Assembly: GCF_000315625.1 (NCBI RefSeq)
Contig: NW_005434648.1
Location: forward strand, 534,974-598,973
Source: Guillardia theta CCMP2712
Lineage: Eukaryota > Protista > Cryptophyta
DNA length: 64,000 nt
Direction: 5' to 3'
This document shows, piece by piece, positions 37,149 through 43,239 of the stretch. The notes under the pieces are model-generated. The model did no database searches. It was not told the origin of the DNA and saw only the letters and a list, made by a program, of their open reading frames with translations. How positions within the stretch are numbered: position 1 is the first letter of the stretch; each line of letters starts with the position of its first letter. The position numbers and the translations under genes were made by a program.

Positions 37149-38685
37149 TTACTTGACCTTCTCCAGCGCCTGCATGGGCGTCATGCCGGGGTTGGCAACG
37201 AGCATCTCCTCGATGGCGATGATCTTGGTGACTCCGTCGATCATCTTCTGGACGAGCTCGACCTCGGAGAACCCGATGCGCTGCTTGTTGGAAATGTCCC
37301 ACTTCCCTCCTACCGCCTCCGAGTGCTCGCCCGACGACCCGCGCGGCTGCAGGTCGAAGGCATCGCAGACCTTCTCGAGGGCCTTGGGGTCCTTGTTGAG
37401 CTGGGGGATGCGGATCATGACAGAGGCGCGGAGGCCAGTGCCCAGGTTGGAGGGGCAGGTGCCGAGGAAGCCGAGCTTGTCGCTGTACATGAGCTTCGCT
37501 CCGTTCTTCTGCGCGGCCTCGGCGATGGTGTCGGAGATCTTGCAGAAGCGAGCGAAAACGGACCAGACGTCTCCTCCCTTCTGCATCGAGATGATGCGGC
37601 AGTGGTCCTCCTCGTTGCACCAGGCCAGGGCAGTCTTCTCGTTGTTGTGGAAGATGCCACGGTTGTCGGGCCACTGACGAGCAGCTCCAGCAACAGCAAG
37701 CAGCTGGGCTGGTCCTGGCTTCTGGAAGAGGAAGCCGTTGGACTGAAGCATCTCCTCCTCCTGGGCGGTGAGGTTGCCGAGAGGGTAGTACTTCCCTCGC
37801 AGTTCTCCCTGGAACATGCCGAACGCCTGCTTGAGAACGTTCTCCACCCCCTCGCGCTCCTTGGGAGTGGCGCCGCAGGGAAGCGAGAAGCCGCTGATGT
37901 TCCTCGCCGCGCGCACGCGGGTGGACTCGACGTACTGGTCGAACTTGAGCTGCTGCTCCCTGCTGAAGTTGAGGTGGAGGGGGTTGAGATCAGACCTGTG
38001 GGACTGGGTCTCCGGGTCGAACTTGTGCCATCCCTTAACGATGGGGTAGATGATCTCCTTGAAGAGGTCAAAGCACTCCTCGTCTCCTGCGGTGAAGCCG
38101 ACGCCAAGATGAGGCTTCAGGACTCCGCACTGGATGGCGTTGGAGAAGGAGTAGCCCTTGGAGGAGGTGATGTCCTTGTACTTGGCGAAGAGATCTGCAG
38201 TGAGGACCTTGGACATGAGCGAGCGATGGCCCGAGTGGAAGGGAGGCAGCTCAGTAAAAGTGATGAACTTAAAGTCCTCGGTGTCCTTGGGGTCGGGCTT
38301 CGAGTTCTTCCTCTGCTCCTCCAACCACTTCTCGAACTTGGCGACTTCTGCCTTCTCCTCGGCTGACATGCTCTTCTTCAGAGTGCTCTGATCCATGAGC
38401 ACATCACAAACAGCAAACTGACTATCTATTCATCCTCTTACCTTCTCAGACTTTCCTGCTTTGGACTTGGGAGCCCATGGCTCCACATCCTTCTGCAGGT
38501 GGCTGCGAACTCCTGCACGTCAAGGAGTCAGCTTCCTAACAGGTTCAATCATTGCCATGGTGGAGAAACGTCCGAGCGTGGAGGAGGAAGGAGGACAGCG
38601 GTAGCATTTCGCACTCACCATAGGCAGCAGCCAATCCAAGGCTCAGGGCGATGCCAATCTCGAAGGCAAGCTGGCGTCCCTGCAT
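37149..38685 (-). CDS. ATP:guanido phosphotransferase (arginine/creatine kinase family)
   Basis: STRVRAARN, WPDNRGIFHN, NEEDHCRIISMQKGG, CPSNLGTGLRASV, DISNKQRIGFSE; inferred 5' exons give MQGRQLAFEIGIALSLGLAAAYG. Confidence 0.95.
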
Positions 38686-39654
38686 GGAATGAGCAATAGG
38701 AAGAGGACGCGCTGCTTGTCACACCTTGATGGCGTCATTCGGTCCAGATGCAAAGGTGCGGATATAGACTTGCTTCGCGCGAGAAGCATAAACCTTGGAT
38801 ACCAGGAACCTACGAAGGAACATTCCCTGGCGCAGGTCATCAGCAATGTATGAGTGGAGAAAGGAGCTGAATCGACGAATGCTGGTCGTCCATTTCACGC
38901 TGGCATGCATTCTATTCCGGTTTCTTGCATCATTCATCCACCACATCTTCTTTCCAGCTCACAAAATCCTTCTCCTCAAGTATTCCTTCCCTGCTCTGAA
39001 CACTTTCACTTGTGTGTCATCAGTACCCCTTCATAGGTGGGTCAAAGTCAAACATTCGATTCTAGTCGTCTTGTCCCACTTCCATCTCATTGTGACATGT
39101 CTTCATCCTTCTCCTATCTACTTCCTTCCTCTCCTCTCCCCTCTCCCCTCAGCATTTTCGTCGCTGGAACTGAAATGCCCTACATCTTCTGCATGCTCTA
39201 CACCCTCAAGCGATCCTGCGAGGCGGACATGCGTGTCCATGGGGGTGGGGGTAGATGCCGGGGAGGTAGCCAAGATCAAATTGCGGTAAAGACGGTATTT
39301 CAAGGGGTACTTATGTGGTAAATTGATGGTGGGGGTCCATCAATAAGGGGTGGGTGATCCCATACCAAATGACATTTCTATATTGGTTAAGTGACACACT
39401 ATGACCAATGGTGACCCAAAAATTAGAATCTCAAAAAAAAATGTCGAAATCGCGGTGAGGTGCAAACCCCGAACGGTAAAACAACAAAGGAGCAACGAGA
39501 ATATAGAATGTTGTGATTAAAAAAAAGAACATCCCTGCAAATCCACCTGTACAAATCAATTCTTCCGAAGTCTAAACACCCGTCTGTTTATCTATCAAAG
39601 TAGAAGTAGGGGTGGGTACCAGGTTTGTGGCTCAACAAACTTCGAATATTTCCC

Positions 39655-40017
39655 GCCTTCCCGCCCTCCCGCCTTCATCCGAAGTCTAATAACTACCCGT
39701 TTGTTTATCTGTCGAACTTGAGTAGGGGTGGGTACCAGGTTTGTGGCCTTCCCGCCCTCCCGCCTTCATCCGAAGTCTAATAACTACCCGTTTGTTATCT
39801 GTCGAACTTGAGTAGGGGTGGGTACCAGGTTTGTGGCCTTCCCGCCCTCCCGCCTTCATCCGAAGTCTAATAACTACCCGTTTGTTATCTGTCGAACTTG
39901 AGTAGGGGTGGGTACCAGGTTTGTGGCCTTCCCGCCCTCCCGCCTTCATCCGAAGTCTAATAACTACCCGTTTGTTATCTGTCGAACTTGAGTAGGGGTG
40001 GGTACCAGGTTTGTGGC
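39655..40017. repeat. 90-bp tandem repeat, about 4 near-identical copies plus one degenerate copy at about 39565-39630
   Basis: AGTAGGGGTGGGTACCAGGTTTGTGGC recurs at 39721, 39811, 39901 and 39991. Confidence 0.97.
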
Positions 40018-40161
40018 TCTGTAAAGATTTCCCCGCCCTCCCGCCTTCTCTCCCTCCCTCCCATCCTCCCTCCCGCCTTCCATCACTCCCTTCTTCCCGC
40101 CCTCCCTCCCTCCCTCCCTCATTCCCGCCTTCCGAAGCTCCCGCGTTCACCCTGATCAAAT

Positions 40162-42090
40162 ATGGGGAAAAGGAAAAGAGGAAAACAAAGAAAGTCTTGT
40201 TCTGATTCACAGACGACTGTCAAGATGTGTTTGAAAAAACATCTCAAACAACACACAATGATCGGTGTGATTGATGATTGGGTGAAACACATAAGCAAAA
40301 TAAGCCATCGAGGTAGCATCATCTTCAATCATCTATTGTTATGGTGTTTTGAGAAGGATTCAATGCAAGGTGATGATACGTACATTACAAGGCTGTTTGA
40401 TCAGATATACAATCGTACTAGAAAAGTAACAGACAAAGAAAAAGAAGAAGGGATGCAAGAAGAAACGGTCAAGACCAATGGTGGAGATAAAGTTTTCTTT
40501 CGGACCTGTTTTCTGATGGGTGAAAAACGCAGAGGTAATGCAATTCAGTTTGATATTTTAGACGAGTTTTGGCAAGAAAAAGGGAACAAGTATCCACCAA
40601 TACAACGCAGGAAAGAAGGGGATATTCGAGTACTGTACTATTCTGCTGATCAATATGCAACAAATTTCCAAAATTACATATTCTATACGATGGGACAAAA
40701 ACAGACTAGATACATAAAGGAATGGGGAAAGCTCAATGGGATTTCTTCAGAAAATGAGATACAGGATATACGGAATACAGTAAACGGATGGAGCTTTCCA
40801 CCAAAAACTCGTGTTCTCGAAAGACAGGATGTCATTGATTTCATAAGGGAACAAAAAGAGATCATTGGATGGGACAATCATTATAACTTGTCATGGACCC
40901 GTGACAAAATCAAGAAAAACCCTGATCAGCAAAAATGGATGCAATTACACATGCCAAATCTTGTCAAGTACCATTTTTCGGTTCTGAGGTTTTTGGAGAT
41001 TCATGATATATCTGATCGATACACGATCGCTCCGATTTTTCAGATACGCAAACAATTTATTCGCGTAGACATTTGGGGTTTATTCTACATTATGGATCAA
41101 TCTGGTCTGTTGCAATATTCAAAGGGTGGGAAAAGCAAATGCATGAAAAAGTTCACACAACAAAAACATAAGCGATTCTTGTCGGTGTTGAAGCTACAAT
41201 CAAATTTGAGAAAGAAAGGGACAGTTGATAGCATACAGACTGACGGAGTCGCACTCTGTGTGACGTTCAAGAAGAGAATACACAATGAGACAGACAATAC
41301 TACTACAAAGAAAAGCAAAACAAGAGATTGTGATGTGTCCTCAAGACGAGTTATTGCAATCGATCCTGGTCGCAATGTACTGATATGCGGTGTCGAGCAA
41401 ATACCTGGTCAAGAAAAACCAAAGCAGTATCGATATACTCGAAGGCAGTACTATCATGAGTCTCATATTACTCGGAATAACGCCAAGTTAGAAAAATGGA
41501 GACAAGGCATAACAGAGGAATCAAACGATATTGCAAGAGTGTCAGCAAAAACGTCTCGGTTGGATCACTTTGAAAGATACATCGACACCGTGGTGAGACT
41601 AAGCGAGATCCTGTTCGAACACAATTGTCAAAACAAGTTCGCACGCCTGAAGATGGATAACTACATCCACAAACACAAGGCGATTGATACGTTCTTCAAG
41701 AAGATGAAAGGTAATGGGACAGATCAAAATCCAATAATTGCATACGGTGATGCATCATTCGGTTGTACTGGGCGTGGAGAGAAGTCAGTGCCTGTAAAAT
41801 GGATCAAAAGGCGATGTCAGAACTTCTTCGAGGTGACGGCAGTTGATGAATACAGAACGACAAAATGTTGCAATCAATGTCATCAAGAATTGTATGATTT
41901 GAGACGCAAACAAATCAACAAGAATGGTATACTTGCTGACGAAGTGTCAGTGGTGCGGGGTTTGAAATGGTGCAGATCCACCAATTGTGTTCAAAACCGT
42001 ATCAAGTCTCGTGATGTCAATGCTGCTATGAATATTCTATTGTGCTACATGTCTCTACCAGCACGACCAGATTTTCTGAAACGGCCTTGA
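40162..42090 (+). CDS. Fanzor (Fanzor1-type) RNA-guided RuvC endonuclease, eukaryotic TnpB homologue, 642 aa
   Basis: IQTDGVAL; RuvC-I VIAIDPG (D401); bridge-helix region RYTRRQYY; IIAYGDASF followed by shifted glutamate VDEYRTTK (E563); Zn ribbon CCNQC...CRSTNC; RuvC-III SRDVNAAMNI (D618); N-terminal basic NLS-like MGKRKRGKQRK; no introns. Confidence 0.93.
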   Translation: MGKRKRGKQRKSCSDSQTTVKMCLKKHLKQHTMIGVIDDWVKHISKISHRGSIIFNHLLLWCFEKDSMQGDDTYITRLFDQIYNRTRKVTDKEKEEGMQEETVKTNGGDKVFFRTCFLMGEKRRGNAIQFDILDEFWQEKGNKYPPIQRRKEGDIRVLYYSADQYATNFQNYIFYTMGQKQTRYIKEWGKLNGISSENEIQDIRNTVNGWSFPPKTRVLERQDVIDFIREQKEIIGWDNHYNLSWTRDKIKKNPDQQKWMQLHMPNLVKYHFSVLRFLEIHDISDRYTIAPIFQIRKQFIRVDIWGLFYIMDQSGLLQYSKGGKSKCMKKFTQQKHKRFLSVLKLQSNLRKKGTVDSIQTDGVALCVTFKKRIHNETDNTTTKKSKTRDCDVSSRRVIAIDPGRNVLICGVEQIPGQEKPKQYRYTRRQYYHESHITRNNAKLEKWRQGITEESNDIARVSAKTSRLDHFERYIDTVVRLSEILFEHNCQNKFARLKMDNYIHKHKAIDTFFKKMKGNGTDQNPIIAYGDASFGCTGRGEKSVPVKWIKRRCQNFFEVTAVDEYRTTKCCNQCHQELYDLRRKQINKNGILADEVSVVRGLKWCRSTNCVQNRIKSRDVNAAMNILLCYMSLPARPDFLKRP

Positions 42091-42205
42091 ATCACACATG
42101 GGTCTGGTTATACTTCAACCTGTTCTTCATAGAAAGGATGAAGTACGAGTCAGACACAAGGAAATATTGGCGTGTGGGTCTTCAATGATCCATAATTTCG
42201 ACGGA
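42087..42205 (+). ncRNA. Candidate Fanzor omegaRNA (scaffold about 42087-42185 plus downstream guide)
   Basis: Begins at the Fanzor stop; long hairpin 42102-42155 (GTCTG/CAGAC, TACTTCA/TGAAGTA, CCT/AGG, TTCT/AGAA); outer pairing TTGAA-TCACAC with GTGTGG-TTCAA. Confidence 0.55.
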
Positions 42206-42269
42206 AAATTTAGAATTTTGAAATTTTATGTTTTGTGTCGTTTAGCTAATATCCTCACAATCTCCCTAC

Positions 42270-43239
42270 CCCCATGGAATGTTTTGTGTGCAAGACAATC
42301 GTCAGGAAGGCGGACAGACGAGGAAAGCGACCGATGGTTCCAGAGAGAGTGTAGGCTCGGCCTTGCCTTCTCGTGTATCTGATCAAACCTCGTCAAAACT
42401 GCCTTGACAGCATCAAGTCAAACTCACTCGAGCAACTTCTCTCGTCGTTTCTCACGAAGCTCAGTAGACTGCAGAGATTGAACAAACTCTCAGAAGATAT
42501 GGAGAGGAACAAATTAACGAGCAACAAAAAGAGCAGAAGAGAAGAGAAGAGAAGAGAAGAGAAGAGAAGGCTCGTCTTCGACCTTGGCGTATGTCGCCTG
42601 CATTTCTTTCCTTCGTTCTTCATACTCGTTGTAGTTGCCCTTGTGGTGGGTCAGACGTCGGGCTATGCCGCTGATGTGCAGCATGTCGGTGCAGACAGCA
42701 TCTAGAAACATGCGGTCGTGCGAGACGACGACGACGATCCTGCTCTTCCACACCTGCAGGCCAGTCGGAGAACTCAGAGAGCAACGACACGCTGAAGGGG
42801 TAGGACGAGCAGTAATGGTTTGGGGGCAAGCAGAAGTATGAGGTGGTGGTGGTGTAGGGAGGAGAAGGAGGAGGTGGTGGTCCATGTGGTGGTGGTGGTG
42901 ATGTAGGAAGGAGGAGGTGGTGGAGGAGGAAGAGGAAGAGGTGGAGGTGGAGGTGGAGGTGGTGGTGGAAGAGGAGATGTTTGTTTTACCATCGAGGTAG
43001 CAAGAGTTCGCTGCAGCCACAGCACGCCATCAATCGAGAGATGGTTCGTCGGCTGCAAGATCAAAATTTCAACTTCCTGCTCCTCTTTCTCCTCCTCTCC
43101 GCCAACCTCATCCAGCAGTAGGATATCGGGCTTTGCAAATAGAGCAGCAGCGAGAGCAACGCGCACTCTCCATCCTCCAGACAGTGCCTGATCAGAAACC
43201 GTCAACAACCTCATCATTTCCCGCTCCCCCTTCCCCCTT

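Follow-up and report, generated by a model that had tools for sequence, protein, structure and literature searches.

TnpB and Cas12 have eukaryotic counterparts, the Fanzors. The described systems closest to the locus reported here, an open reading frame (ORF) at 40162-42090 of a 64,000-nucleotide stretch of the Guillardia theta CCMP2712 genome, are SpuFz1 of Spizellomyces punctatus with its carrier element Spu-1 (Saito et al. 2023, PMC10432273; structure 8gkh), GtFz1 from the same alga (Saito et al. 2023; Xu et al. 2024, PMC11423790; structures 9cer, 9ces and 9cet) and the TnpB proteins of IS200/IS605 (ISDra2, 8h1j), which hold the ancestral RuvC/TNB core and are the source of the homing model. 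In SpuFz1 elements a CA is conserved upstream of the 5' repeat, the target-adjacent motif (TAM) is CATA, and dC(-4) is read by R96 (PMC10432273). GtFz1 has a measured TAM of TTAAN and an omegaRNA that overlaps 17 codons of its ORF, and when it was tried at eight human loci no editing could be detected (Saito et al. 2023, PMC10432273); its third catalytic residue, N658, is non-canonical (Xu et al. 2024, PMC11423790). In TnpB elements the omegaRNA lies at the right end, the flank provides the guide, and TAM and transposon target motif are one and the same. A homing or retention role has been discussed for Fanzors as well but not demonstrated (Saito et al. 2023, PMC10432273).

The stretch analysed (contig NW_005434648.1, positions 534,974 to 598,973 of the forward strand) is referred to below as the window, and coordinates are those of the window unless another contig is named. 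An earlier note, made from the letters alone, had read the ORF as an intact, intronless Fanzor with RuvC residues D401, E563 and D618, a Zn ribbon and an N-terminus resembling a nuclear localisation signal (NLS), and this description is borne out. The ORF runs on the plus strand from an ATG, without internal stops, to give a protein of 642 amino acids, and its lack of introns fits with the rest of the genome, where six further copies carry the same uninterrupted frame. The catalytic residues lie where they had been placed: DPGR starts at residue 401, VDEYR at 561 and SRDVNAA at 616, with the codons of Asp401 (RuvC-I), Glu563 (RuvC-II) and Asp618 (RuvC-III) at 41362-41364, 41848-41850 and 42013-42015, all on the plus strand. 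The motif YGDASF begins at residue 528. The Zn ribbon is made up of CNQC at 570-573 and CRSTNC at 604-609 (CxxC...Cx4C), its cysteines C570, C573, C604 and C609 being encoded at 41869-41988 (+). The basic cluster KRKRGKQRK is present at residues 3-11; its likeness to an NLS is a resemblance only, and it sits in residues 1-12, which are disordered in the structural model described below (predicted local distance difference test score, pLDDT, <50).

When 1.84 billion representative sequences were searched exhaustively with phmmer, 1,827 relatives came up at an E-value of 1e-3 or below, and from these 96 diverse homologues, mostly full-length, were used to build an alignment and a profile. All 96 sequences have D401 and E563, and 95 of them have D618; the four Zn-ribbon cysteines are conserved in 47-82 of the 96. 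The family profile matches SpuFz1 (8gkh) at E 4.6e-33, PpFz1 (9cf0) at 4e-32 and GtFz1 (9cer) at 4.4e-25. Searches with the single sequence are nearly blind to this protein, and the assignment needed the profile and a fold search: in Pfam the 642-aa protein matched just PF07282 (Cas12f1-like TNB; residues 557-625, E 2e-4, below the gathering score), in NCBIfam it had no match, and phmmer against the PDB gave nothing relevant and did not reach the GtFz1 entry.

The alignment of 96 sequences was also used to produce an AlphaFold2 model with a mean pLDDT of 92.2 and a predicted template modelling score (pTM) of 0.90. When this model was compared with the PDB by Foldseek, the seven best matches were all Fanzor1 cryo-EM chains, aligned along the full length with template modelling (TM) scores of 0.52-0.73. 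SpuFz1, the best match by profile, is also the best by structure (TM 0.66-0.73 over ~680 aligned columns, at ~16% identity in the structural alignment), and the model superposes on SpuFz1, PpFz1 and GtFz1 from end to end. Cas12f, Cas12h and TnpB reach TM scores of at most 0.3; the match to TnpB (8h1j) is a distant one (E 4e-4, TM 0.2-0.3), and TnpB differs further in being bacterial, with a small REC, a Y1 single-strand transposase and neither inverted termini nor duplications. The approximate domains of the model are WED and REC (15-372), RuvC (397-562, with a helical insert at 436-516), TNB/Zn ribbon (565-612) and the RuvC-III helix (617-630). The comparison with SpuFz1 and GtFz1 that the earlier note had proposed has been made, and both match; the RuvC/WED fold, whose absence would have spoken against a Fanzor, is present in the model. 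Also upheld is the downstream shift of the RuvC-II glutamate: E563, in VDEYRTT directly before the Zn ribbon, pairs with E613 of GtFz1, and a triad with its glutamate on the loop before TNB agrees with the Fanzor1 description in PMC11423790. The D-E-D triad is the canonical one, as in SpuFz1. The setting is nuclear and eukaryotic: the genome is that of G. theta CCMP2712, and a neighbouring minus-strand gene, with transcripts at 42209-42470, has a spliced 49-nt intron (42379-42427, GT..AG).

It is clear from the profile homology and the full-length fold match that this protein is, almost certainly, a Fanzor1. Fanzor1 identity and likely nuclease activity, taken together, are given good confidence, and the ORF probably encodes a working RNA-guided nuclease.

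The earlier note could not say whether this exact protein had already been characterised. The genome (87.1 Mb in 669 contigs) was surveyed, and the GtFz1 gene was found on contig 7 (locus L046:1432-3501), where it encodes 690 aa identical to PDB 9cer, 9ces and 9cet. The omegaRNA published for GtFz1 (NW_005434667:896451-896603; Xu et al. 2024, Table S3, PMC11423790) also maps there, its first 31 nt starting on contig 7 at the identical coordinate, 896451, so that the genome is that of Guillardia theta CCMP2712. Beyond the shared organism, the two proteins have the same Fanzor1 architecture, yet BLASTP aligns them at 22% identity over just 320 residues (E 8e-6), in the RuvC half only, with D401, E563 and D618 paired with D427, E613 (the glutamate of VPEHYTS) and N658 of GtFz1. 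The window protein is therefore not GtFz1, and the possibility that it is GtFz1 or an allele of it is vanishingly small: the low identity already refutes this, GtFz1 is longer and encoded on another scaffold, an aspartate in the window protein takes the place of Asn658 of GtFz1, the two elements are unlike in their ends and flanks, and phmmer with the window protein misses the GtFz1 entry altogether. The window locus is not among the G. theta loci in the supplement of Saito et al., which lists scaffold_7 and scaffold_348 only, and a full-text literature search on Fanzor and Guillardia theta returned nothing on any other family from this alga. On its sequence, the window gene is an uncharacterised Fanzor1 lineage, separate from GtFz1. 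It belongs to a known class with solved structures, one of them from the same organism, and leaves the general picture of Fanzors unchanged.

The nearest relative outside this genome is from the cryptophyte Hanusia phi. Within the genome, at least two further Fanzor1 lineages were seen. One, at ~41% identity, is found on contigs 72 and 201 (L012 and L013); it was considered as a relative of the element described below and rejected, as it has neither the ends nor the scaffold in common with it. The other, at ~47% identity in the C-terminal and 26% in the N-terminal part, occurs on contigs 23, 87, 111, 29, 61, 40 and others in at least ten copies, all of which have a single in-frame TAA, possibly the mark of an intron.

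The gene is carried by an element read as 39384-42247, 2,864 bp in length, inserted within a TA-centred target. At the left it begins with a terminal inverted repeat, TGGTTAAGTGACACA (39384-39398, +), preceded by a flanking motif of Y and then ATAN (here T and ATAT; 39379-39383, +), in which ATAN is the probable target-site duplication and Y plus ATA the predicted TAM. At the right it closes with the terminal inverted repeat ...TGTGTCGTTTAGCTA (42234-42247, +), up to which all copies are alike, followed by the right copy of the ATAN duplication (ATAT; 42248-42251, +), that is ATA and a variable base. Both the terminal repeats (39380-39398 with 42234-42252; 19 nt, 79%) and a sub-terminal pair (left arm 39413-39436, +, with 42216-42239; 24 nt, 79%) are imperfect. 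Between the left end and the ORF lie a 90-bp tandem array of 4.0 units (39655-40017; Tandem Repeats Finder, 99% matches), whose unit number varies among copies as judged by BLAST offsets, and, just upstream of the ATG, a CCCT-rich pyrimidine tract (40032-40120, +; period 4, 22 copies by the same program). The array also gives rise to a spurious 174-aa ORF on the minus strand (39686-40210).

These boundaries are defined by comparison of copies. All of the 17 right ends compared, a metagenome copy included, are alike as far as ...GTTTAGCTA, after which come ATA, a variable base and then unrelated sequence; all nine readable left ends show flank-Y-ATA-N followed by TGGTTAAGTGACAC... The fourth base of ATAN is equal on both sides in 5/7 copies, which is only suggestive because N is mostly A. 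The two mismatching copies are reciprocal, one with A at the left and C at the right and the other with C at the left and A at the right (L002 on contig 78 and L005 on contig 14), which suggests an ectopic exchange between them.

A six-frame search of the genome found seven intact copies at 99% identity or better, on contigs 26 (two copies), 78, 30, 14, 1 and 6, one of them with a 2-aa insertion, together with two full-length but frameshifted copies and many fragments. The element was also met, at 98-99% identity, on an environmental metagenome contig (L091); the right flank there is absent from every reference copy, which makes this an independent insertion. The GC content of the element is 0.42, against 0.51 for the window. 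The element is best read as a young multi-copy, non-autonomous DNA transposon that has recently moved, with the Fanzor as its only gene. In this it resembles Spu-1, which likewise has a single ORF, inverted-repeat boundaries, no transposase and many ORF-less relatives; it differs in size (2.86 kb, including the 90-bp tandem array, against 2.1 kb) and in its terminal repeats (~15 nt and imperfect, against 30 nt).

Genome-wide, right ends (~23; L023-L045) were seen in larger number than left ends (~10; L047-L057), many copies being 5'-truncated with the right junction intact and the left end gone, and the read depth of a DNA run increases toward the 3' end of the element. For most truncated copies no target-site duplication was found. 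Two pieces of the right end stand alone: one of 225 bp (L037; contig 101, 173017-173177 region) has direct repeats matching at 14/15 positions, AGGTCAA[G/A]TGAATAA, and one of 47 bp (L044; contig 191, 50179-50225) has perfect 9-bp direct repeats, ATTACAATC.

Terminal inverted repeats and a TA-centred target are traits of an IS630/Tc1-mariner-type carrier. IS630 itself targets CTAG. A young ORF-less sister family of 2.4-2.5 kb, whose members are 99% identical, is found mostly at CTAG; it shares the 15-nt terminus, having perfect termini, TGGCTAAGTGACACA, one base off the Fanzor left end, and, immediately inward of one end, has a long perfect hairpin. Its members include L088:501-3036 (contig 14, 255941-258476) and others on contigs 157, 199, 12, 26 (163883), 83 and 274. 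This family and the Fanzor element probably use the same transposase. It was rejected as the autonomous partner, having no ORF of at least 100 aa and no Pfam signal, and also as a "ghost" carrier of omegaRNA since, unlike the Spu-1 ghosts, it has no scaffold sequence in common with the Fanzor element.

In the whole genome just two matches to DDE_3 (PF13358) were found, at L046:560-1453 (contig 7, 893559-894452) and on contig 345 (4420-4815); these are IS630/Tc1-type pieces, each beside a GtFz1 copy. On contig 7 the match consists of two adjacent ORF pieces directly upstream of GtFz1 and overlapping its start. GtFz1 has two copies, each with a DDE_3 transposase gene upstream, whereas the seven intact copies of the window family have none. 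The DDE_3 transposase was rejected as the partner because both matches adjoin GtFz1, away from the Fanzor-element termini, and cross-mobilisation is not supported given that the GtFz1 right end is unlike that of the window element. The association of GtFz1 with DDE_3 fits the TA-centred targets of the window element; the target site of GtFz1 was judged from right ends alone. A piggyBac-type TTAA target was rejected for the window element, whose flanks are ATAN.

The right end of the element is the predicted source of the guide RNA. The putative omegaRNA scaffold, placed at 42027-42247 (+) by fold, conservation and the stand-alone copy, would overlap the last 21 codons of the ORF, with predicted hairpins at ~42040-42066, 42097-42160, 42174-42193 and 42199-42240, the last of which stops 7 nt short of the element end. 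The sense strand of 42027-42251 folds at -60.2 kcal/mol (z -3.0), as well as which only 2 of 200 shuffled sequences fold; the antisense strand gives -47.3 kcal/mol (z -2.1). Better folding on the sense strand, with an end at the point where copies diverge, is what an omegaRNA would be expected to show. Eight copies share the 161 nt downstream of the stop codon without a single difference. The stand-alone L037 piece, in unrelated sequence, is a copy of exactly 42027-42250, and its junctions were found in high-depth contigs from two runs of uncertain type, probably RNA; this copy suggests that the functional unit starts ~21 codons ahead of the stop. The predicted overlap with the ORF end would be comparable to the 17 codons reported for GtFz1. 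At ~220 nt the predicted scaffold is longer than that of SpuFz1 (~89 nt), and a search of the right end against Rfam gave nothing relevant. The candidate guide template is the unique flank 3' of the element (42252-42271, +), which is unrelated among copies and is proposed by analogy with GtFz1; the guide might instead start at 42248.

The flanks of the element in turn suggest what the nuclease would recognise. Upstream of the 5' repeat the window element has YA where Spu-1 has CA, followed by TA in each case, in agreement with the CATA TAM of SpuFz1. The right end presents AATA plus N, against YATA plus N at the left flank, and would be a near-copy of the TAM or flank motif with its first base changed. 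GtFz1 is similar in this respect: its two genomic copies diverge right after ...CTCTAA, giving CTAA plus N, one base off its TTAAN TAM. The motifs themselves differ (TTAAN against YATAN). By its likeness to SpuFz1 and GtFz1, the TAM of the window protein may be YATA(N); this specific TAM together with the homing details that follow is put forward tentatively, as possible rather than probable.

Under this proposal, which follows TnpB in the right-end RNA, the flank-derived guide and the identity of TAM and target motif, transcription of the final ~220 nt of the element, which overlap the ORF end, would yield the omegaRNA scaffold, with the guide coming from the unique flank just beyond the right end. 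Once assembled, the ribonucleoprotein would recognise the element-free insertion site, reading the YATA(N) TAM and then the guide match, and the D401/E563/D618 site would cut the element-free allele; repair from the occupied copy would put the element back, a route demonstrated for bacterial TnpB. Beside the guide match, the right end at an occupied site shows AATA in place of YATA, and such a site would therefore be spared. The cut-and-paste step would be carried out by a transposase supplied in trans. The broader form of the idea, that the TAM of the nuclease is the insertion motif of its carrier, that the first base is masked at the right end as in CTAA versus TTAA of GtFz1, and that the surplus right ends serve as extra guide-RNA loci, is rated rather unlikely.

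Several observations weigh against a working nuclease with this guide RNA and this target. The omegaRNA, its ends and the guide start are predictions. Among ten right-end variants no compensatory pair was found; of the one-sided changes, 12 keep a standard pair and 5 break one. The 88% relative L058 (JGI 3300016466 contig, 1910-2047), from another sample, is without the ~150 nt corresponding to 42061-42210, retaining ~35 nt at the start of the predicted scaffold and ~40 nt at its end and having an 8-nt insertion near the ORF end, and hence the two central hairpins might not be needed or might lie outside the RNA. In one raw-read run sense RNA-seq coverage is very low, and the reads across the right end are mostly antisense, from transcripts of neighbouring genes. 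The element contains no transposase, nor any ORF besides the Fanzor, and no transposase partner was found for it elsewhere in the genome. The duplication could be TA, TAN or ATAN. Lastly, when the six copies of equal length are compared with their majority sequence, 7 synonymous and 21 non-synonymous changes are seen, where ~1:4 would be neutral. Transposon copies that arose recently and drift independently show such a pattern, and with near-neutral change within the genome any single copy could be impaired.

It could be argued from the last point that the ORF is intact but that the window copy, or even the entire family, has ceased to work as an RNA-guided nuclease and belongs to a young decaying transposon, its protein or RNA partner being impaired. 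The 5 private amino-acid changes of the window copy, the barely detectable sense transcription, the two frameshifted full-length copies and the dozen or more truncated ones would all be expected in such a case. Against this, the triad and the conserved positions are untouched, and the private changes occur at alignment positions that are variable or gapped or, as with D109 and P145, give the commonest residue of the wider family, so that nothing in the sequence of the window copy argues against its being functional. Over the longer term the ratio of non-synonymous to synonymous substitution rates (dN/dS) is 0.23 relative to the intact protein of L058, which shows that the protein has been kept by selection, and eight copies agree completely in their right ends. 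A decayed copy or family is therefore considered unlikely, although it retains an appreciable minority chance. A far more improbable explanation is that the gene has been domesticated by the host, or that its product is a non-nuclease derivative such as an RNA-guided DNA binder. The element has no transposase of its own, and some Fanzors may function differently from TnpB (Saito et al., PMC10432273), both of which could be taken in its favour; however, the gene is multi-copy, with inverted termini, target-site motifs and a base composition distinct from that of the window, its full D-E-D triad is kept, and its insertion sites differ between the reference and the environmental contig. Neither a single syntenic cryptophyte locus nor loss of a catalytic residue, as might accompany domestication, was seen. 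An active Fanzor1 carried by a mobile element remains the preferred reading.

The antisense transcripts at the right end were traced to the neighbouring minus-strand gene. They end within 42209-42251 (-), where a poly(A) site, at 42209, falls within the right end of the element: 37 reads have a non-templated run of T before 42209, and these come from both the window copy and a copy on contig 82 (marker 42230 G>A), where the antisense end recurs. The right end of the element appears to terminate antisense transcripts that read into it. Upstream of the element, an ORF of 417 aa at 37149-38402 (-) appears by eye to encode a phosphagen kinase of the arginine-kinase type, and is presumably a host gene.

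Fanzors are candidate compact genome editors of which just a handful have been tested. With a canonical active site, seven intact copies, ends defined to the base and a predicted TAM, the window protein is a ready candidate for biochemistry, and the clear inverted repeats and target motif of its carrier offer a way into what Fanzors do for their transposons. If the proposed mechanism is true, the Fanzor would be a retention or homing device for transposons that are moved by a transposase in trans, and this element would provide a clean natural example of a eukaryotic RNA-guided nuclease matched to a cut-and-paste transposon.

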